A stretch of DNA of 64,000 nt, taken from the NCBI RefSeq assembly GCF_964188315.1, contig NC_135662.1, positions 17,484,001-17,548,000 on the forward strand, read 5' to 3'. The notes under the pieces are model-generated. The model was not told the DNA's origin, searched no databases, and saw only the letters and a list, made by a program, of their open reading frames with translations. Numbering within the stretch: position 1 is the first letter of the stretch; each line of letters begins with the position of its first letter. The translations under genes were made by a program, and so were the position numbers. The stretch comes from Podarcis muralis (lineage: Eukaryota). Below, piece after piece: positions 1 through 62,804 of the stretch.

Positions 1-1919
1 TAGGCTATTTTGCATTATTCATAAAAGGCAAAGCCGCAGATGAATAATAAATGTTGTCGCCAGTCCTTTTGTAATGCTTTATGAATTCATTCCTTAAAAA
101 AAATATTTGGTGACTTTACTTGAATATTTTTTCTTGCATGTTTGTAATAATGGTCTCCATTTTTCGGGGCGGGAGCTACTTAGTGGGTTCTGAACCATTC
201 TGAAGATGTCAAGCTTTTTAGTTGCAGTTTGTCATTTTTGGTATCGCTATAACTTACCTATTTGATATAATCTTCTTGCAATGGGATGCACTGTTCAGGT
301 GTCAATGAGTAGAATATCAAGTGAAAGAGGATGTTGAGCAGTCTCACATACAGTATTACAGAAATCTCAGCGTGCTCTAAGACAGCGTCGCTTTATTGGC
401 TTATTGAGTAGCTGCAACTTCTAGGCTTATTCATGAACTTCATACCTCAACATTCCCCAAAGAACTAATTGTTGTTCCTTGAGTTCCAATGTGATTATTA
501 TTTTTTACTTGAGTATGATGCACTAAGAAGAAAATTAATTGCTTGAATTGTTTTAATAAAAGTAGCCAGTGTTTTGTGTGGCATTTGAAAATGGGACATA
601 ACTCCAGATGAGTGTGGGGGCTATAAGTTAACGTTGATTGGCTCATCACCATTCAGGATGGTGTGATTTAACCTCAACCAACAGGTGTGTGATTGACTGC
701 CCCTGGATTTAGTTGCTATCTTGCCTCATATTTGCCAAGTTCTTCTCATCTTCTTAACTAAATCAGCTGAATAATCCGTAAACTGAGTTTTTATATCTGC
801 AGGACATTCAAAGCTTATTTTTTTACACAGGTAGCAACATTACTTCAAAGGTGGTTATGTTTTAGCCAGTGCACATAACACATAACTTGAAGGCCTTTTC
901 AAGACTTGTTTCTGCCAGGAAAGTATAGTAGATGCTTTGCTTCTAAGATGTGGTTTAAGAAAACAAAACAACTTCTGGATTTTATCAGTCCAATGGATCC
1001 ACTCCACAGCATTGTGTAGGTCAGAATTGGAAGGAAGGTGGCATTGGTGAATGAGACTGGGACATTGGTGGGAAAAAAAGGACCAAGATTCTTAATCTAA
1101 TATAATTCAACATAATTATGAATGAGACAATGGAGAAAATGAAAGCTCTTGATCCACCATGGCTACAAATGGTTTCTTCCAGTGATCCAAATGACTTTCT
1201 TCAAATGATTAAATTGATTTTTAAATGGTTTTTCTTATGTGAGTGTTTTTCCCCCTTTTGTGTTCTAATTAGTGATTAATGATTTCTGTTTGAATGTTCT
1301 GTATTTGTTGCTACTTTCCATTTGATGATTATGTACTTTGTAGTGGCTTAGTAGTATTTAGATGAAAACATATTTGAGTTTCACAAACACCCGAGTCTGG
1401 AAACATTGTTATGTGTTTTATTAAACTTGGCAGATTCTCAGGCTTTAAATCAAATTATGAATATGAATGGTAGAGGCTGATGGGAGGAATGTGGCATTGC
1501 CCCATCATACAGCCCCCCACACTCAACAATGAAGTCCAACAAAACATAAGAAAATGTCTGTCAAGAACTAATTTCAAAATATTATGAAGTTCAGTTATAA
1601 CATACATTGAAATCAATGTAGGGGGTAGGCAGAAACGAAGTGTAATCTGCTCCTCTCAACATCTTGGTTATAAGCAATGGCTTCACTAGAATGTAGATGC
1701 ATTCTTTGGGGGAAAACAATTTTGTGGACTGCGCCTCATGTTGCTTGCATTAGCTTAATGGTCTGATCCTTGGAGCACTGCACGGGCATTTAAATGTACG
1801 GTTAGCATTTCTCCCCTGCATGAGCCCTTCTAGTCTCAAGAGATAGACAGAGCATCCTCTTTGGCAGTTCTCTTGAGAAAGAGTCAACTGGTGGAGTTTT
1901 CTGTGCTTGTCTTTCCTTT

Positions 1920-2156
1920 CCTCCTCCACATGCAGCTGCTGGGTGACCTTGGGCTAGTCATACTTCTTTGAAGTCTCTCAGCCCCACTCACCTCACAGAG
2001 TGTTTGTTGTGGGGAAGGAAGGGAAAGGAGATTGTTAGCCGTTTTGAAACTCCTTCGGGTAGTGATAAAGGGGGATATCAATCCAAACTACTATTCCGCC
2101 TCCTCCTCCTCCTCCTCCTCCTCCTCCTCCTCCTCCTCCTCCTCCTCTTCTTCTTC
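1920..2156 (+). mobile_element. Squam3-type (MIR/Ther1-derived) SINE, 5'-truncated, (CTC)n(TTC)n tail
   Basis: Core ctccacatgcagctgctgggtgaccttgggctagtca...gatatcaatccaaact, near-identical to 6692 and 14942. Confidence 0.82.
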
Positions 2157-3863
2157 AGATCAGCTTTAGCTTCTGTTGTTGCTAATCTTTTGATTGTATT
2201 TTTTAGTGATTTTTTTAAAAAGTGAACCACAGTTAACAGAGAATAAGAAATGGAAAATGGATGAGATAGTTCCTCGACTATCTGCTGGTATTGGAGGAAG
2301 CTGGCTTTGGAATTACTTGGAGCTCTTCAGCAGCAGAACACAAAAGTAATTCATCCTTGGATTAACAGTCAAGGGTACTTACATTCAGAGTAGATTCACT
2401 GAAATCAGTAACTAAAATAATTTTAATGGGTCTGCTCTTTGTAGGATTTAGTTGTGTGCTGCTGTAAATATTTTACCACTGATGGGTAATGGTCTAAAAA
2501 CAACTATTGCACAAACAATGCTCTGACGATTTTGGGAGAAGTCTCCCAACATAGGCGGACTACTATAAAACAGGGTTTGGGAGCAAACATATGTCAGTTG
2601 AGGTAGCATATCTCTCTGCCTGGGTGCAAACAATATGGGAGAGTATATTGTCATTATGCCCTGCTACTTGGCTTCCCAGAGGCACTTTGCTGGCTTGGGA
2701 TGGACAAAATGGATGCTTAATCTGATTCAACAAGGCACATATTGCTTTAAAAAATCCATACTGTACTTAATCCTTACAGTATTAGCAGCCTTAGATCCAC
2801 TTCTTTCTTCACAAACCAATCTTTTCTGTGAATCCTTTGGCTTAACTCATGAGTTTCTATTTATACGAGCCCAAATATCTCTTAACTTGAGGATGGGGCA
2901 CCAGATTCTGCTGGACTCCAACTTACATTAGTCCTAACCAGCTTGGGCCATGGTTAGGGATGATGGGACTTGGAGTCCAGCAATATCCGGAGGGCCACGG
3001 GTACCTCACCCTTACTCTGACTAAATCAAATGCACATGTTTCCCTTTGGCCTCACCCCCATCATCTTGTTTGTAAAATGCCGTGCACATCGATGACACAG
3101 TATACAAAACTGATTATTTATGTAACTCTATATAACTTAACAGCCACCACCGTCTCTTGAATGTTGTAGCATTTCACATAAAATATCTATAAAGCTTAAA
3201 CATGCCGTGACCAAAGTTCATAACAACTTGGTGTGTGGTTAGTTGTCTGATACTTTTGAATTTTCTGAATGAGCTTTGGTTTTGAAGATTAAAGCCTTAT
3301 AGGATGAGTTTGGAAGTTTAATAGAACGGATGGGGTGCAATAAATATTACAGAACACTGTTAGACGAGAAACCACATGTTTCCTTGAGAAATTAGTAAGT
3401 TTGGTTGCCATGTGATGTGCCTGATAATGAAATTGGGGAGGGGGGAATGTGAGTTTGTGTGATAATGTGGATTCTAAATGCTAGATAATTAATGAGTGTG
3501 TTGGCTAGCGTTCATATTCAGCTCTAGCCAGAACACTCCAGTTTCTGAATTGTGTCCAAGTTTTCCTATATATGTGCTGCTTGTGTAGGAAACACACAGT
3601 CCACTCTTTTGTTGCTGCTGTACTCCTACACTTGTGCCTGATAGAGAGTGGCAGCAGTTGTGTGTGGGGAAGTAACAACACTTTAGAAATATGGTAGATT
3701 TAGGAATGCTGGAGGATTCCGTCAGAAATGGAAACTGGATCAGAAATCACAGCAATTTTTGTGTTCATTAGAGGTCTGGAATAGGACTCAATCAAGTGAA
3801 TACGCATGGTATTTGCTATCATTTTTAAGTTCATGAACATTATGTAAATAATTACATGATAAA

Positions 3864-4083
3864 ATCATAGAATCATAGAGTTGGAATAGACCACAAGGGC
3901 CATCGAGTCCAACCCCCTGCCAAGCAGGAAACACCATCAAAGCACTCCTGACATATGGTTGTCAAGCCTCTGCTTAAAGACCTCCAAAGAAGGAGACTCC
4001 ACCACACTCCTTGGCAGCAAATTCCACTGTCGAACAGCTCTTACTGTCAGGAAGTTCTTCCTAATGTTTAGGTGGAATCTTCT
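3864..4083 (-). mobile_element. CR1 LINE 3' end, 5'-truncated
   Basis: atcatagaatcatagagttggaa is the reverse complement of the CR1 (ATTCTATG)n tail, followed by a typical CR1 3' region. Confidence 0.85.
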
Positions 4084-6691
4084 TACTTTCTTCCTTATTC
4101 TCTGCGTTGTTTTTGTTGTTCCATGGAAATTGAATGTGTAATTGATTACAGAATTATATTTATTAGATAATTAATTACATTCATTTTGGCCATAGCAAAG
4201 CGTGAGAAGAACAACATAGGTTTTAGTGGAAGCTGAGAGAGATTATCCCGCTGCTTCTCAGATGGTTATGGGACATTGTGCAAGACCTGATCTTGGTGAT
4301 GTAAGCATTCATTTTAAGTTCATATGGGGAGAAGCAGTTCTTTTAGTTATCTGTGTCCCAGTATATGTTAGCCCAGTACTTATGCTATCTTCTAGTTGTG
4401 TTTCCTGTCCTTGCTTAGGGATCAAGGAATCAACAATATTGTAGTTTGTCAAAAGGCATAATGATACCTGAGTCCACTGCCTTTTAGATTCTTTAAGATT
4501 ATATTGTTTCATATGAATGCCACTAAGCTGGAACCACGTAGAATAATGATTGTGTGACTCTACCCTCTGGCTCATGCATTAGTGCAGGCTTGCATGAGTG
4601 CAGGTTGACGTTGTTGAACTACAACTCCCAGTATCCTTAGCCAGTTTCATCTTCAGATTTGCAATCTTGAATAAGTGGCAAAAGTAAGGTGCACATCTAG
4701 GATGATCAAGAATTATCCTTAGTGAATACTTTTATAAATTAGAAAATTGGAACAGAGTTGCTGCTTCTAATTCTGGCAAGTGATAGGTCCTTCTTTCGCA
4801 ATATGTGAACTAGGCAGTTGAGTGAAGCTTTCGTTGGCTAGTAATTCTGAAGTCATGCCTTGTAAGGCTGGATTGTTTCGTCACAGGACCATAGTTTAGC
4901 AACTTAGAATTATTTTAGGAGACATCATAGATCACAAATTACGTATTACTTTGTAATTGGATAAAAATGAAATTTTGCTCATATCTTGGGCAGGCCAACA
5001 TATTAGGTATTAAACCCCGAGGGGGTAGAGTGGGTTACAGATACCGCTTTTGAACACACACCCTATGTAAAAGAATCTCTGTAAATCTGGAGTAGTCAGT
5101 GTGGTGCCGTCTAGATCACAACTCTGATACGGCTATGTTGAGTAGTAATGACAGAAATTGTTGTCGAAGAACGTCTAGAGGGTACATCTGCTATAAGTAA
5201 AAACAACAATTCTAGCACATCACTTAGATATGTCTTGAAATATAAATGCTTTTATATAAGATTAGGCTCCAGCCAACCTCCCACCTCTGTGGTTGTGGTT
5301 GGTTTTTTGTAGTGTTTTATTTCTAGGTAGGGAAACTTAGAAATGTGATTCCCTACCTGTAATTTTCCCTACTTGGGCAGACCAATCCTGTTGCTTGCTT
5401 TAATGAAGTTCGAAGCAAGAACAAACAAGCAAAGATGAAAAAAAAAAACCTATTGTTTTGTTCTAAATATGGCATTTCATGTGCGTTCTTGGACAAAGGC
5501 AACAATACAGTCTTCTGTTTAGTGATCGTTTATTACAAATATATATTTATTAAAACATTTCAATCTCGTTGAACTCAAGTGAGTTAAAACAACAGACGTT
5601 GCCAGACCTGTAATGCTAGCATCTTTTCTGATTATTTTTTAAAGGCATTGAAACTATTGACCGCTGCTATTGTTGCGATAGTACATGCCATGGAATAGTC
5701 TGTGTGAATAAACATTTCCCTTTGTCTGTCCTGAAGCTATTTCATTGAGGGACTCTACCACTCTGTTCATTGTATCTATTTTCAATTCTGTATCTCCTTT
5801 CTCGAGTAGAAAACTAGTCCAATATCCCGTAGGTTTTCACACCCAAAAAATGTCATGGGGGGATGTGCAGGGCTCTCCATTCAGGAGTAGGGAGTGCAGC
5901 ATACAATCATATGAATTTGAAAGGTTCAGGGAAACTCTGGTGCTACCCTGGATGATTTTTACCTTTCTAAACTCTTTCTAATCTTTATAAACTCCAGTGC
6001 TACTACATGCATCTTCTTATTTAGTATTCTTAAAAATGTATTATTTGTATTTATTTCCTGAAATTTATACACTACTTTATTGAAAAACAACAGGTCAAAG
6101 CAGTTTATTAAACAAAATGGAACAATAAAATTATCAATAAGAATTAATAACAATAATTTAAGACTTTCAGAAAGTTAAATGAACAATAGATTGAAAGCTG
6201 CCTCCGTTCCCAGTTTTAAACATTGCATGTTCGGGTGAATTCCTAAACATAGCTCCTGAATTTGGGCAGTTTCATCCCATGAGATACCACCAGGCCACTG
6301 TGCTCTGTCTGAATGGATCACTGCTCCTGCTCTCAATCTATGTACTCACTGTTCGCGGAAAGCTGACTTCAGCATGCAAAGCTGGTTTTATACCTCTTCA
6401 GAACTATCAAACAGAGGTACAGTCTCCAAAAACTGTGGCTGTGTTTTCTTGAGTTAACAAGTAGAATTAAAGTGTTAATACAGTACAAGACTTTTGGCCT
6501 TTTGCCCAATATGGCATTGATGTGCCTTGCATATAAGCACAACTCAGAAAACAGAGCACGGAAGTAAAAGAGACAATGATTCTGGTCTTGCATCTTGTTG
6601 TATCCTTATAACTGCAGTGCCCAGGACAAGATGCAAAACAGCTGTTGCTGTTCATATGCACGTGGTTTAAAATGGTTCAGATAGCTTCAGA

Positions 6692-6960
6692 GAGCCAGTG
6701 TAGTGTAGTGGTTAAGAGCGTAATCTGGTGAACCGGGTTCGCTTCCCCGCTCCTCCACATGCAGCTGCTGGGTGACCTTGGGCTAGTCACACTTCTCTGA
6801 ATTCTCTCAGCCCCACTCACCTCACAGAGTGTTTGTTGTGGGGGAGGAAGGGAAAGGAGAATGTTAGCCGCTTTGAGACTCCTTCAGGTAGTGATAAAGT
6901 GGGATATCAAATCCAAACTACTCCTCCTCCTCCTCTTCTTCTTCTTCTTCTTCTTCTTCT
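6692..6960 (+). mobile_element. Squam3-type SINE
   Basis: tRNA-like head gtagtgtagtggttaagagc...ccgggttcgct, shared core and (CTC)(TTC)n tail. Confidence 0.85.
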
Positions 6961-7851
6961 GAGGAGACAATTATAGACCTCCAAAGCTGAACCAAAATTT
7001 CTGTTTTGTATAGAGAAAAGGTGGCTGTTCTTGGTTCTGGACTCAACACATCAAGAAGCCAGTCCTGGCTTCCTGTGAATCCATGTAGTGGAAGAGATGT
7101 GAGTGGTGGGTTTGGACAGATTAAATTCCATGCACAGCCATGAAGCACACTAGGTGGCTTTGAGCACACCACAATCTCTCGGCCTGACACCTCTTAGGAT
7201 AGTTATTCAGTTAAATCGTTCAGTTCTGCTTCCAAATTAGAGAGGACCTTACTGACTGTTTAGAGGTTGCCATAGAGCTGGTTGGCTAACGACAAAAGGT
7301 TGGCTTTTATGCTAGTTACGGCAACAGTATGGTAGTAATTTTCCTTGAGGTTTACTCCCGAAGCCTTTCTCTCTGGAAAATAGGGACACTTTGAGGGTCT
7401 GGTCTTGTGGTCTGGGCAACTGAGGATCTCCATACACACTGCCCAGGCTTGCATCCCGGAGAGGCAGCAGTTACTGGACTCTGCAACCACAGCAGGTGCT
7501 GTGATTCTCCAGTGCTTTGACTTCACCCCTAGGGGCACACTCCATTGTCTCTCAAGACAGATGGATGCCAACAATGGTAGCAAAACTTGAAGACACTGCT
7601 TTTCATTTTAAAATGTAATTGTAAATTGGAGTACTGTATTATGCAAATCATAAATTTGGTATTAAACATAGTTACTGTGAAGTATCTCTCATCCTTTTTT
7701 GGAAGTATTTCTGTTTTTCTGTTTCTACCTCTAAAATATCTCCCTTTGCTTTCAGTGGGAATTATATTTCTCCAAGCAATTATTTAGACCTGTATTTGAA
7801 ACCTACTCTCTTAAAAGCCTAATTCAGCCATTATTGCGGAAGCTAGGCATC

Positions 7852-53915: not shown

Positions 53916-54423
53916 TACTTGTTTGTTTGTTTGTTTTACAGAAATCTAGTCTTTGTTCAGTTGAACGACCTCCGCATTTTTTTTACAAAGCAGCCTTGAA
54001 GTTACATTGAATCTTTGAGCTTGCTCTAAAGTTGCAGCAAATCACATGCGAAACCCCTTCAGACTTAATCATAATAATAACAACAATAAAAAGGAATATT
54101 TGCTGCCGCTTGGGCACTTCAAAGCTATCACCTCTCCCGTCTGTACATGACTAAAAGGCTTTAAGGCAGATAGTAGAAGGGGAAAAACAATGAAATCAAA
54201 GACAGTCTTAATATACAACTATTATAGGCTGCATAAGACATTTGAAGAATATCTCAAAATATTTATAGGTTCTTCTGATGCATGCACATTACCAGCTGCC
54301 TTTCATGTTTGTGGTGTAAGGCGCTTGAAATACATCTTGGGGGGGGGGGCGGGGGGAGAGGAGAAAGTTGTATTTCCTGCATGCTGTTTATGTGTGTTTA
54401 CCGTGTGGTGTATCCATCTAGAG

Positions 54424-54927
54424 AAGGGTTTCCCAAACTTGGATCTCCAGCTGTTTTGGGACTAGTAAAGGCAAAGGGACCCCTGACCATTAGGTCCAGT
54501 CGTGACCGACTCTGGGGTTGCGGCGCTCATCTCGCTTTATTGGCCGAGGGAGCCGGCGTACAGCTTCCGGGTCATGTGGCCAGCATGACTAAGCCGCTTC
54601 TGGCGAATCAGAGCAGTGCACGGAAACGCCGTTTACCTTCCCGCCGGAGTGGTACCTATTTATCTACTTGCACTTTGATGTGCTTTCGAACTGCTAGGTT
54701 GGCAGGAGCAGGGACCGAGCAACGGAAGCTCACCCCGTCGCGGGGATTTGAACCGCCGACCTTCTGATCGGCAAGTCCTAGGCTCTTTGGTTTAACCCAC
54801 AGCGCCACCCGTGTCCCGTGTTTTGAGACTACAGTTCCCATAATCCTGAGCTAGCAAGACCAGTGGTCAGGGATGATGGGAATAGTAGTCCAAAAACAGC
54901 TGGAGACCAAAGTTTGGGAAACCCTTG
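54424..54927. mobile_element. Hairpin hAT MITE carrying the nested Sauria SINE
   Basis: TIR aagggtttcccaaact / agtttgggaaacccttg, preceded by atctagag (54416-54423). Confidence 0.8.
54465..54817 (-). mobile_element. Sauria SINE nested in a hAT MITE
   Basis: Full body on the minus strand. TSD tgttttgggacta / tgttttgagacta (54452-54464 and 54819-54831). Confidence 0.92.
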
Positions 54928-55178
54928 AACAAGCAAACTTTTTCAGCAGGGGGCCGGTCCACTGTCCCTCAGACCTTGTGCGGGGCCAGACTACATTTTG
55001 AAGGGGGGGGGGAAATGAATGAATTCCTATGCCCCACAAATAACCCAGAGATGCATTTTTAACAAAAGCACACATTCTACTCATGTAAAAACACACTGAT
55101 TCCTGGACCGTCCACAGGCCGGATTTAGAAGGCGATTGGGCTGGATCTGCCCCCCAGGCCTTAGTTTGCCTACTCATG
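54928..55178. mobile_element. hAT MITE of the 37372 family, left end damaged
   Basis: agcaaactttttcagcagggggccggtccactgtccctcag ... ggccttagtttgcctactcatg, followed by gtctagag. Confidence 0.82.
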
Positions 55179-55401
55179 GTCTAGAGCAGTGTTTCCCAAC
55201 CGGTGTTCCGCGGCACACTAGTGTGCCGCGAGACGTTGCCTGGTGTGCCGTGGGAGGGAGGCGGGCAAGTCGGGCGGCGAGAGGCGGGGCGGCGGCGGCG
55301 AGGATCCGCGTCGACCCGGGGGCAGCTCCGCGGTGGTGGTGCCGAGGTTTCTCTCTCCATTCTCCCCTCACACACACACACAGGATCAGCTGACAGGACT
55401 C

Positions 55402-55410
55402 GGCCAATGG
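55402..55410 (+). promoter_or_regulatory. CCAAT (NF-Y-type) box upstream of the captured ATG
   Basis: GGCCAATGG, with CCAAT at 55404-55408, about 70 bp upstream of ATG 55476 in CpG-island-like sequence. Motif only; function untested. Confidence 0.5.
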
Positions 55411-55475
55411 GGCGGCGGCGGGGCAGCGCGCGCAAAAGGGAGGAGCGCGAGACAGCGGACGAGGAGGAGGCCGGC

Positions 55476-55754
55476 ATGTCCGGGCAGCAGCAGCAACAAC
55501 AGCAGCAGCAACTCCCGGCGACGGCTCCTCAAGCCCCGGGCAACCCTACTCCCTCACCGGCCTCGGCCGCCCTCCTGCTCCACCCGCCGCCGCCTCCCCC
55601 GCCGCCGCCGGCCACCTCGGCCCCGCCGCCGCCCCCTCCTCCGCCCGCTATCGCCGCCACCACCACAACAGCCGCCGCCGCCTCAGCTGGGCCCATGCCT
55701 GCTGGGAGCGGCGGCGGCGGCAGCAGCAGCAGCAGCGCCCCGGCGCCCTTCCCT
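55476..55754 (+). pseudogene. RANBP9: Captured 5' fragment of RANBP9 (N-terminal Q/P/A-rich region) inside the hAT element
   Basis: Translation MSGQQQQQQQQQLPAT...SAALLLHPPPPPPPPPATSAPPPPPPPP...SSSSSAPAPFP. It has the same ordered motifs as recalled human RANBP9 (MSGQ..QQQQQQQQL..AAALLLHPPPPPPPATAAPPPPPPP..SSAAAPFPHGDS). Low-complexity sequence and identification from memory. Confidence 0.8.
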
Positions 55755-55774
55755 CCCGGCGTGACGCTGCGCGC

Positions 55775-55782
55775 TGACGTCA
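55775..55782. promoter_or_regulatory. Perfect CRE palindrome TGACGTCA in the hAT arm
   Basis: gcTGACGTCAcgggg, conserved in both copies of the element. Motif only. Confidence 0.4.
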
Positions 55783-55871
55783 CGGGGCTGTAATGGTGGT
55801 GTGCCTCAAGATTTTTTTCATCAAACAAGTGTGCCTTTGCCCAAAAAAGGTTGGGAAACACTGGTCTAGAG

Positions 55872-59834: not shown

Positions 59835-59969
59835 CAGTGATGGCCAAACTTGGCCCTCCAGTTGTTTTGGGACTACAATTCCCATCCTTCCTGACCACTG
59901 GTCCTGTTAGCTAGGGGTGATGGGAGTTGCAGTCCCAAAACAGCTGGAGGGCCAAGTTGGGCATCACTG
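59835..59969. mobile_element. Hairpin hAT MITE (135 bp)
   Basis: TIR cagtgatggccaaacttgg / ccaagttgggcatcactg. Perfect 8-bp TSD tactaaac. Confidence 0.88.
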
Positions 59970-60225: not shown

Positions 60226-61647
60226 TGGCATCTGTTTGGTAACTGTGGAATTAGGATGCTGGACTTGGTGGGTTAATGGCATGATCTGCTAGCAAGACTT
60301 TTCTTATATCGTGTTTAAGGTTTCACGAGCAAAACCCAGTCGAGCCAACTCACTTCCTTAGAGGGAACCCCAGAAGCACAAGGGTAAGAATCAGGCCCCT
60401 ACAACTAGTCCTTCTGTAACAAGAAAGGACTGAGGAATACAGCTCTGGATACAGCTTTTAGGGACCATAGAAGCCGTAGGGTGTCTGTCTTCAAGCCCTG
60501 GATGTTGCCACAACATGTATGAATGTTGTAGAATACTAAGTTGTGGAAGTGGGACACACGCACATACCCCGGCTCCCAGTGTATGGATGTTGTTGGCACA
60601 CAGAGGAGCCTGAAGCCTGAAACTCCTACTGCTGAAATCCTAATCAGGAATTAGAAGGAAAGGTGGGAGGTAGAGAAAGAGAATTGAGCAGTGTGAGAGG
60701 GATATGTCTGTAGTCTGAAAAAGCATTTTATTCATAATGACTCAAACCAAATGTTCAATAAACACTGATTTCTTCATTATTTTTTATTTTAATCCAGTCT
60801 TTTAACACTGCGACATCTGTGGCTTACTGAGCTGTGATGACACTTTTGACACAAACAAATGGATTTACAACTAGTCATGTTAGGTCAGGATGGTGTGAAT
60901 AGCCTATGGAAATAAGGTTGGAACTGGAAAAACAACATGCCTGTAATGCTGGTCTAGCGAAATGACAGTGTCACTTCTCAGTGTTTTAACGTTTGTCAAC
61001 TGCATGTTACTCTCTTTGTCCCTCAGGATGGCAGAATTTCCTGCATCCATTCATTTCCAAAATAGAGATGATCTTTTCTTGATATCTCTCCCCCCCCCAA
61101 ACCCCTCCACACACATACACAGCCTTCACTAGGTCTTATTAACAGATTGTATGCGTGAACACTTCAGGGTCTTGAATATTATTTCATTTTTCAGGCTCTT
61201 GCATTCTGTGCCTTCTTAGAAATAACAGAAAGGGGTGGGAGAGATTTCTGTCACTAAGTTGACTGCAAATTCCACAGCCAATGACAAGATGAAAAAGAAG
61301 CATTGAATGAGTGTAGAACACCCGTTTTTAAAAAATAGTGATGGTTTCTTGAAATGTGTTTGACATGTCCTCAGCTGAAGACAAGTGGATGTGGCAATTT
61401 TATTCAGCCTTTGTAAACTCCCACAAAAATGAGTTTGGAGTCCGATGCCTTTGAGGATTGTTATTAATTACAATTACACAATGCTGTTCAGTTTTTATAT
61501 AGGTTCGAATTCTGTGGAAATCAATGGCATTAAGCAGCCACACTGTCTCTCAGCATTGCTGCTTTGATCTTTTTTCACATCATTCCCCATGAGGTGGATA
61601 TGTAAAGCTGGGAGACCTGATGGTTGAGCAGGATCATGAACCTAGAC

Positions 61648-62341
61648 CAGTGTTTCCCAAATGTTTTTGGGCAACGGCACACCTGTTTACTAAAAAAAAA
61701 TCTCGCGGCACACCACCATTAAAGCCCCGCCCCGTGACGTCAGCGCGCAGCGTCACGCCGGGAGGGACGCACAAAAGTGAAAGTTTTTTCCCTCCCCCTT
61801 GCTGGGGAACCTCCAAGCTTTGGGGGTGGGAGGAGGCAGCAGAGCGAGGGACTGAGGGACGGCGGCAACTGAGGCGGCGGCGGCTGAGGCAGAGCTGGGA
61901 AGGGGGTTTCCAGGGGACACGGCAGCTCCTCGAAAGGCTTCTCTCAGCTGCGCTCAATCCGCCTCGGAGAGGATTTCCCCTCCGGTCCCATGCGTTCGTT
62001 TGGGGCATCGCTCCGGCTGCTCCCTCTCCCGCCGCGCAGGAGCGATGCCTCTCTCTGGCTTTCCCTCCGCGCAGGCTGAGGGAGGGAGGGAGGGGCGCGT
62101 GTGACCCGTCTCTGCTGGGAGACCAAACCCAGCGAGGCAGAGTCGCGCGGAGGCGCCCAGGCAGCGCTTCCGGCTGCGAGGAGGAGCGCCAGGCAACAGC
62201 AGGAGGCGCGGCCTCTCCTCGCCGCCGCCGCCCCGCCTCTCGCCGCCCGACTCGCCCGCCTCCCTCCAGGCATCTCGCGGCACACGAGGCAACGTCTCAC
62301 GGCACACTCGTGTGCCGCGGAACACCGGTTGGGAAACACTG
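61648..62341 (-). mobile_element. Non-autonomous hAT element (Pack-type), copy 2 with a different cargo (694 bp), inverted relative to copy 1
   Basis: TIR cagtgtttcccaa ... ttgggaaacactg. Perfect 8-bp TSD acctagac (61640-61647 and 62342-62349). Arms 61648-61767 and 62216-62341 match the copy 1 arms in reverse complement. Confidence 0.92.
61724..61742. promoter_or_regulatory. GC box plus CRE in the hAT arm
   Basis: gccccgcccc (61724-61733; reverse complement GGGGCGGGGC) is adjacent to TGACGTCA (61735-61742). Motif only. Confidence 0.4.
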
Positions 62342-62804
62342 ACCTAGACCTCTCAAGTCTTATCTCCAGAAATTCCAAGAAGAAGGATGATAACTGCAGC
62401 TGCAACCATCTGTTTGGACTTGAATAGGCTTTGAAAATGATGTGGGTAGCATTCAACTAAGCTTCACATAGTGCGGACCGATTGAAATTAATTAACGTAG
62501 CCAAGTTATGTCCTTTAATTTCAATTGATCTACTCCCCCATGATTTCCAGCTTATATTGTGAGATGCTCTAGTTAATTTTGCCAAACATTTCACTTGGCT
62601 CTTGGAATTGAATGCTGACTCAGGTGATTGACTCAGGGCTTTTACAGGCCCTCTGTCTGGTCTCCCTGTAGTTTTGGTGGAGTTTCTGGCAGTGAGACCA
62701 GGGATAACCGACATATTATCTGTGATATGGCAATATCCTCCTTCGATCCCCATAAATTGTGAGATTACAGTTCAGTATATTCATTGCTTTTTTTTTACCC
62801 AAGC

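Follow-up and report, generated by a model that had tools for sequence, protein, structure and literature searches.

A young non-autonomous hAT element of Podarcis muralis with a CpG-island-like interior of probably mosaic, repair-built origin

Results

Two inverted elements with common ends

This study analyzed a 64-kb window of the Podarcis muralis genome, that is, the whole stretch of 64,000 nucleotides in which all positions below are numbered, and identified two related transposable elements near its right-hand end, designated copy 1 and copy 2 (Table 1). The initial annotation had described copy 2 as a second, inverted element with its own TSD about 5.8 kb from the first, and this description was confirmed. 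The sequence ACCTAGAC stood on both sides of copy 2, copy 1 was flanked on both sides by CTCTAGAC (in element orientation), and the two copies lay 5,785 bp apart in opposite orientations. The TIR sequence CAGTGTTTCCCAA matched at four places in the window, all of them ends of copies 1 and 2, against 0.21 matches expected by chance.

Table 1. Coordinates of copy 2, its parts, and related features in the window. Depths are multiples of the single-copy level, summed over short contigs.
Feature	Position	Strand	Remarks
Copy 2, non-autonomous hAT element	61648..62341	+	694 bp, insertion polymorphic
Left TSD of copy 2	61640..61647	.	identical to 62342-62349
Right TSD of copy 2	62342..62349	.	8 bp, perfect
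Left TIR of copy 2	61648..61660	+	13 bp, perfect
Right TIR of copy 2	62329-62341		within right arm
Left arm	61648..61767	+	120 nt; outer part with TIR and GGCACAC motifs at 61676 and 61707; depth ~4,000-19,500x single-copy flank
Right arm	62216..62341	+	126 nt; inner 52 nt (GCC)n-rich, outer part holds TIR
Arms, overall			depth ~4,000-21,000x single-copy flank; up to 33,000x with copy 1 as reference
Cargo 2, segment A	61768..61891	+	adjoins left arm; 900-7,600x single copy; common to many members
Cargo 2, segment B	61892..62014	+	central and rarest; 144-1,093x single copy; absent from deletion variants
Cargo 2, segment C	62015..62215	+	adjoins right arm; 800-2,700x single copy
Filler source	61842..61856	+	first 15 nt of filler are its exact reverse complement; chance ~2e-5
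Left-arm continuation	from 61721		AT-rich; 54 RNA reads
Left-arm continuation	from 61733		GC-rich; directly after CRE
Left-arm continuation	from 61768		AT-rich
Right-arm continuation	ends at 62208		15 X7 contigs; GC-rich
Right-arm continuation	ends at 62218		GC-rich
Copy 1, element with the same arms as copy 2	55187..55863	-	677 bp; TSD at 55179-55186 and 55864-55871
Copy-1 interior, measurable part	55300-55499		460-7,000x single copy

Each copy consists of two arms and an interior, here called the cargo. GGCACAC/GTGTGCC motifs were also found in the outer part of the right arm, at 62279, 62301, and 62310; the motifs resemble hAT subterminal repeats and may represent putative transposase-binding sites. 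The inner part of the left arm is GC-rich and contains a GC box and the full CRE palindrome TGACGTCA at 61735. On the strand that new synthesis from either flank would produce, both arms end G-rich (left ...GGGAGGGA, right ...GGCGGCGAGGA), and DNA folding of these inner ends yielded hairpins no better than those of shuffled sequences, with z-scores ranging from -1.5 to +0.4.

The TIRs of hAT elements start with a YARNG-type motif (CAG/TAG), and all four ends of copies 1 and 2 carry a perfect 13-bp TIR beginning with CAGTG. Both copies show the 8-bp TSD of the hAT superfamily, one copy of which is kept in the empty site described below. In other copies of the family, the consensus flank, read from a contig loose end at 62341, is CTCTAGAG, a target of the CTAG-centred type. 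Copy 2 is also MITE-like, being 694 bp long and bounded by TIR and TSD, with no protein-like ORF and with an arm depth of roughly 10^4 times the single-copy level. The transposase of the superfamily has a DDE/RNase-H fold and a hAT dimerisation domain; the ORFs of copy 2 had no Pfam hit, the hAT transposase domain included, and no autonomous partner was seen within the window. A bacterial promoter and terminator scan, of a type inapplicable to vertebrate DNA, returned nothing.

Other repeats surround the two copies. Copy 1 is inserted at the extreme end of a different repeat (54940-55178), whose depth in these runs is approximately 10^5 times single copy, far above that of the hAT family. A frequent internal joint in this repeat, going back by 61-64, indicates a duplicated variant. 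Two further hAT-like MITEs occupy 59836-59969 and 54418-54926; one of them has the TIR CAGTGATGGCCAAACTTGG and the 8-bp TSD TACTAAAC, and the other has a TIR reading ...GGGTTTCCCAAACTTGG and encloses a tRNA-derived, SINE-like insert.

An exact empty site in other individuals

Contigs of two DNA runs (X1 and X7) and one RNA run (X15), together with the raw reads of a further RNA run (X23), were aligned to copy 2 at 80% likeness. One long contig in each of X1, X7, and X15 joined 61639 exactly to 62342, thereby skipping 702 bp, which corresponds to the element plus one TSD. These empty-site contigs were footprint-free and had 0-3 differences in the flanks. Their depth was 15.9 in X1 and 51.9 in X7, compared with 16.9 and 44.1, respectively, for other single-copy contigs of the respective runs; because the empty site was thus present at single-copy depth, the X1 and X7 individuals appear to be homozygous for it. 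A left-junction query of six sampled words scored no higher than 0.50 in any of the runs listed, the known-empty X1 also scoring 0.50, which is weak evidence consistent with a rare insertion. The exact empty site in other individuals indicates that copy 2 is young and polymorphic and that the family was mobile recently.

Common arms around unrelated interiors

The arms of the two copies matched up to sharp breakpoints, as had been claimed for arms of 120 and 126 bp. The left arm of copy 2 was 85.8% identical (103 of 120 columns) to 55750-55863 on the opposite strand, and the right arm was 90.5% identical (114 of 126) to 55187-55304; the BLAST E-values of the arm matches ranged from 1e-34 to 1e-46. 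Identity was highest near the cargo in the left arm, where 40 of the 41 inner nucleotides agreed and the outer part was 85% identical; in the right arm, 51 of the 52 inner nucleotides and 63 of 66 outer positions agreed, the outer part having 8 additional indel columns.

At these junctions the similarity stopped in both arms, and the interiors between them are unrelated. A BLAST comparison of the two cargos at word size 9 revealed no similarity, and local alignment found a single common stretch, an 18-nt (GGC)n run that we regard as a low-complexity coincidence. The cargo is 448 bp long in copy 2 and 445 bp long in copy 1 (55305-55749). The earlier description of unrelated, CpG-island-like interiors of these lengths therefore held for sequence and, as reported below, for composition. 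Chance similarity or an assembly artefact as the source of this arrangement was refuted by the arm E-values, the perfect TSDs, and the identical contigs and empty site in independent runs. Independent contigs of other runs matched cargo 2 with 0 differences, so cargo 2 itself is not an assembly artefact.

The interior of copy 1 contains a CCAAT box and a 91-codon ORF (ATG at 55476) that starts with MSGQ followed by poly-Q. This start agrees with the N-terminus of human RANBP9, and the cargo is a candidate 5' end of that gene. A phmmer search of the ORF against 1.84 billion representatives returned only one unnamed Logan ORF and two low-complexity matches, and a PDB search returned only a spurious proline-rich match. 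A Logan contig reached through that unnamed ORF (L001:1-1751, ERR14042001) was 92.6% identical over its first 163 nt to 55461-55635 of the copy-1 cargo, including the same MSGQ-polyQ start, and continued directly into a different CpG island of approximately 740 nt and then into AT-rich unique DNA. It contained no arms and no TIR and was rejected both as a family copy and as the intact donor; it represents another product of the mosaic process or else a host locus into which sequence from the element was patched.

Copy number and mosaic structure of the interior

By summed short-contig depth, a rough proxy of copy number in which GC-rich DNA is under-sampled, the arms are present in approximately 10^4 copies, a value to be read as an order of magnitude. 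Individual interior types reached 10^2-10^3 copies by depth, and cargo 2 is itself a multicopy subfamily, with roughly 150-400 copies at its centre and 1,000-7,000 at its sides. The cargo-2 segments adjoining the arms occurred on roughly 15-40% of the arms by depth. A contig that matched 61902-62031 with 0 differences had about 144 times the single-copy depth.

The initial annotation had described the interior as a swappable cassette. The three segments of cargo 2 speak against a discrete cassette, because their depths differ 10- to 30-fold; the interior is thus a nested mosaic, and its segments do not travel as one unit. Most other copies of segment A differ from copy 2 at 61773 and 61803. 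At these two positions, as at 61662, 61692, 62061, 62169, and 62196, copy 2 has a base that is absent from nearly all other members, which indicates that its source copy was a minor variant of the subfamily.

RNA reads of X23 over 62097-62342 and 55180-55299, which cover the right arm and the adjoining interior, showed a 3- to 7-fold strand bias, which in copies 1 and 2 alike favoured one and the same strand of the element. The bias hints at element-driven or orientation-biased transcription.

Further interiors, deletion variants, and filler

The proposal that interiors other than these two occur between the arms was upheld. At least five further interior continuations were found on them as loose ends of contigs and reads, each 22-30 nt long (Table 1), and cargo-2-type and copy-1-type interiors together explained only about one-third to two-thirds of the depth of the inner right arm. 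The copy-1-type junction at 62216 was also present among the loose ends. Compared with the window, the five further continuations matched nothing beyond 11-12 nt.

The right-hand breakpoints clustered within some 10 bp, and the left-hand ones covered a range of about 50 bp. Recurrent breakpoints had been named earlier as a feature that would support the family; two copies cannot by themselves show recurrence, since any single replacement yields two sharp breakpoints. With the additional types, the positions clustered and proved not to be fixed, a pattern that fits a soft hotspot and not fixed sites.

The family also includes multicopy internal-deletion variants, with joints from 61786 to 62025 (238 bp missing) and from 61798 to 61996 (197 bp missing). 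These shorter variants spoke against the constraint on cargo length at which copies 1 and 2 had seemed to hint, and the near-equal lengths of their cargos are a coincidence. The 61798 to 61996 joint holds 23-25 nt of filler, and its contig has a depth of 792, approximately 50 times single copy. The source of the first part of the filler lies inside the stretch deleted at this joint and was copied in inverted orientation (Table 1). Filler of this kind, copied in reverse from close by into a deletion joint, is a classical mark of template switching in repair synthesis. The filler therefore carries a template-switch signature, in agreement with the earlier suggestion that template switching in repair acts in this family.

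A dedicated cassette exchange, in which recombination at fixed sites on the inner borders of the arms would swap interiors of constrained length, would account for the base-exact breakpoints that copies 1 and 2 share and for interiors of nearly equal length (448 and 445 bp); the divergence point of one further type is likewise 61768, and those of two others lie no more than 8 bp from 62216. However, other breakpoints lie at 61721, 61733, 62208, and 62218, the multicopy variants have lost 197 and 238 bp, one of them with filler, and the copy numbers of the interior segments are very unequal. No recombinase ORF and no repeated motif at the junctions were found. Instead of the fixed border sites and dedicated recombinase of integron-like systems, the family thus has variable breakpoints, filler at joints, and no recombinase ORF, and we consider cassette exchange very improbable.

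A joint from 62343 to 61642, which leads from the right end of the element to its left end with an 8-nt spacer, was observed in 16 RNA reads, which began at 15 distinct positions and all ran the same way, and one DNA contig of X7 contained the same kind of end-to-end joint. Such a joint indicates that head-to-tail dimers exist somewhere in the genome. Insertion of a second element into the CTAG-type TSD of the first would explain these dimers; an excised circle is a less likely source.

Composition and possible origin of cargo 2

We compared the composition of both cargos with that of the window by using the CpG-island thresholds of Gardiner-Garden and Frommer (at least 200 bp, GC of at least 0.5, and CpG observed/expected ratio of at least 0.6). 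Cargo 2 has a GC content of 0.676 and a CpG ratio of 0.73, and cargo 1 has values of 0.746 and 0.86, against a background of 0.423 and 0.37 in the 64-kb window; both cargos are CpG islands by these thresholds. Cargo 2 carries promoter-type motifs, such as the ETS-like CTTCCGG at 62167. The ORFs found in it are read-throughs rich in arginine, proline, and serine, none of them protein-like, and it has no recognisable first coding exon. Because these ORFs contain no Pfam or hAT transposase domain, cargo 2 does not represent the coding region of an autonomous element.

Searches for a source of the sequence covered the window and several collections. No donor of cargo 2 was found in the 64-kb window. 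In protein collections, the 240-aa read-through ORF of copy 2 had no match, no candidates emerged for the ORF that starts in the left-arm TIR, and exact look-up of two internal ORFs found nothing on record. An exact scan of JGI metagenome contigs for the conserved 34-nt inner left arm gave 0 matches. Copy 2 is a candidate Pack-TIR or Pack-hAT element, with intact TIRs and a TSD around a CpG-island-like, itself multicopy interior without transposase similarity. Cargo 2 may be a captured host CpG island, such as the gene 5' end proposed in the initial annotation, or an older sequence internal to the family.

The latter possibility leads to an ordinary subfamily structure, in which the cargo-2 interior, or at least segments A and C, would be native non-coding sequence, left over when an autonomous hAT lost internal parts. 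Captured host DNA would then be confined to copy 1, and the two sharp breakpoints would record that one replacement event. Several findings agree with this explanation: judged by depth, some 30-39% of left arms adjoin segment A, coverage declines steadily towards the centre of the cargo, multicopy internal-deletion variants exist, cargo 2 has neither a gene-like ORF nor a Pfam match, and two copies define only one pair of breakpoints. However, cargo 2 is CpG-island-like (GC 0.68, ratio 0.73) in a window with a ratio of 0.37, and it has no similarity to transposase. That no fewer than five additional interiors join these arms further argues that replacement was not a one-off event. We regard a native origin of the cargo-2 interior as unlikely, with a probability that is still appreciable.

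Discussion

A repair-based model of the family

The explanation that we favor, and hold to be probable, is that copy 2 is a recent member of an abundant lacertid family of non-autonomous hAT elements whose interiors are a mosaic built by repair. The anatomy and TSDs of copy 2, the common arms around unrelated interiors, the multicopy status of cargo 2, the polymorphic insertion, the additional interiors, and the template-switch filler were all observed directly.

According to this model, the mobile core would consist of the two arms of approximately 120 nt, each with its 13-bp TIR, GGCACAC motifs, and GC-rich inner end. A transposase, presumably supplied in trans, would move any DNA placed between the arms and would generate the 8-bp duplications at CTAG-centred targets. 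After excision or an internal break, copying from a sister or ectopic element may stall or dissociate near the GC-rich inner ends of the arms. Synthesis could then switch to other templates, CpG-island DNA among them, and rejoin, leaving replacements, deletions, and filler. The gap left by excision might be repaired abortively, or a break inside an element might be closed by gap filling, and products that keep both arms would remain mobile and be amplified. Four parts of the model are inferred: that a transposase acts in trans, that synthesis stalls where the arms end GC-rich, that cargo 2 derives from a host CpG island, and that promoters are preferred.

Some observations weigh against the repair-based model. 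The searches described above found no donor of cargo 2; its arm-adjoining segments occur on about 15-40% of the arms by depth, so that cargo 2, or parts of it, could be an older native interior. The extra interior types are known solely from loose ends of at most 30 nt, the window contains no autonomous partner, and the folding analysis gave no support to stalling at the arm ends. A broader version of the model is more tentative, and we judge it possible but slightly more likely to be wrong than right: an active lacertid hAT of approximately 10^4 copies, the G-rich arm ends of which would steer repair into CpG-island promoters, may have repeatedly picked up promoter and first-exon pieces of many host genes and spread each of them to hundreds or thousands of sites.

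Comparison with known systems

In plants, cut-and-paste transposons are well known to capture gene fragments. Animal cases have so far appeared rare and nearly always single-copy: a survey of Pack-TIRs in 100 animal genomes recorded 208 Pack-hATs and 4 multicopy Pack-TIRs, the example having three copies, and gap filling and template switching are published routes to such elements (PMC8277862). The lizard family would differ in being still active, in reaching about 10^4 copies, and in carrying several CpG-island-like interiors on its arms. No description of such a lacertid family was found in the library of papers searched.

If the broader version is true, the family would be a vertebrate counterpart of the rice Pack-MULEs, seeding portable CpG-island promoters throughout the genome. 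It would also provide a natural system for studying repair template switching as a builder of such elements and would permit tests of whether mobile CpG islands give rise to new promoters, chimeric transcripts, or methylation boundaries in a vertebrate. Because insertions such as copy 2 are polymorphic, such effects would be testable within populations.

Among animal elements, the multicopy Pack-hAT-N8_XT of Xenopus tropicalis (Tan et al. 2021, PMC8277862) resembles the lizard family in being a non-autonomous hAT with an interior replaced by non-TE host DNA of the 5'-UTR type, in having distinct TSDs that show transposition after capture, and in its microhomology and template-switch models of origin. 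The lizard family differs in having approximately 10^4 arm copies with several interiors, the interior types standing at 10^2-10^3 by depth, and in that its cargo 2 is only a candidate for host origin.

Rice Pack-MULEs (e.g., PMC5861414; Jiang et al. 2011) reportedly carry many different GC-rich gene fragments between conserved arms, with a preference for the GC-rich 5' parts of genes. They share with the lizard family mosaic interiors and, presumably, amplification by a trans-acting transposase. They differ in belonging to the Mutator superfamily, with long TIRs and 9-10-bp TSDs, and in their plant host; a corresponding 5'-end origin of lizard cargo 2 is putative. Maize Ds elements, compared with Ac, are said to arise by abortive gap repair and to contain filler DNA (Rubin and Levy 1997; Yan et al. 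1999). They are hAT elements that have only their termini in common with the autonomous element, and, as proposed for the lizard family, their interiors reportedly come from interrupted repair with template switches and filler, whereas these interiors are mostly derived from Ac or of unknown origin and not CpG islands, and their copies are far fewer.

Mammalian hATs of the MER1 type, which are related to Charlie, reportedly have CAGTG-type TIRs, 8-bp TSDs, and a TCTAGA-like target (Smit and Riggs 1996). As in the lizard family, their ends are shared and their interiors are not. The MER1-type elements are ancient fossils with short shared ends, whereas the lizard family is distinguished by arms of approximately 120 nt, sharp junctions, and polymorphic insertions.
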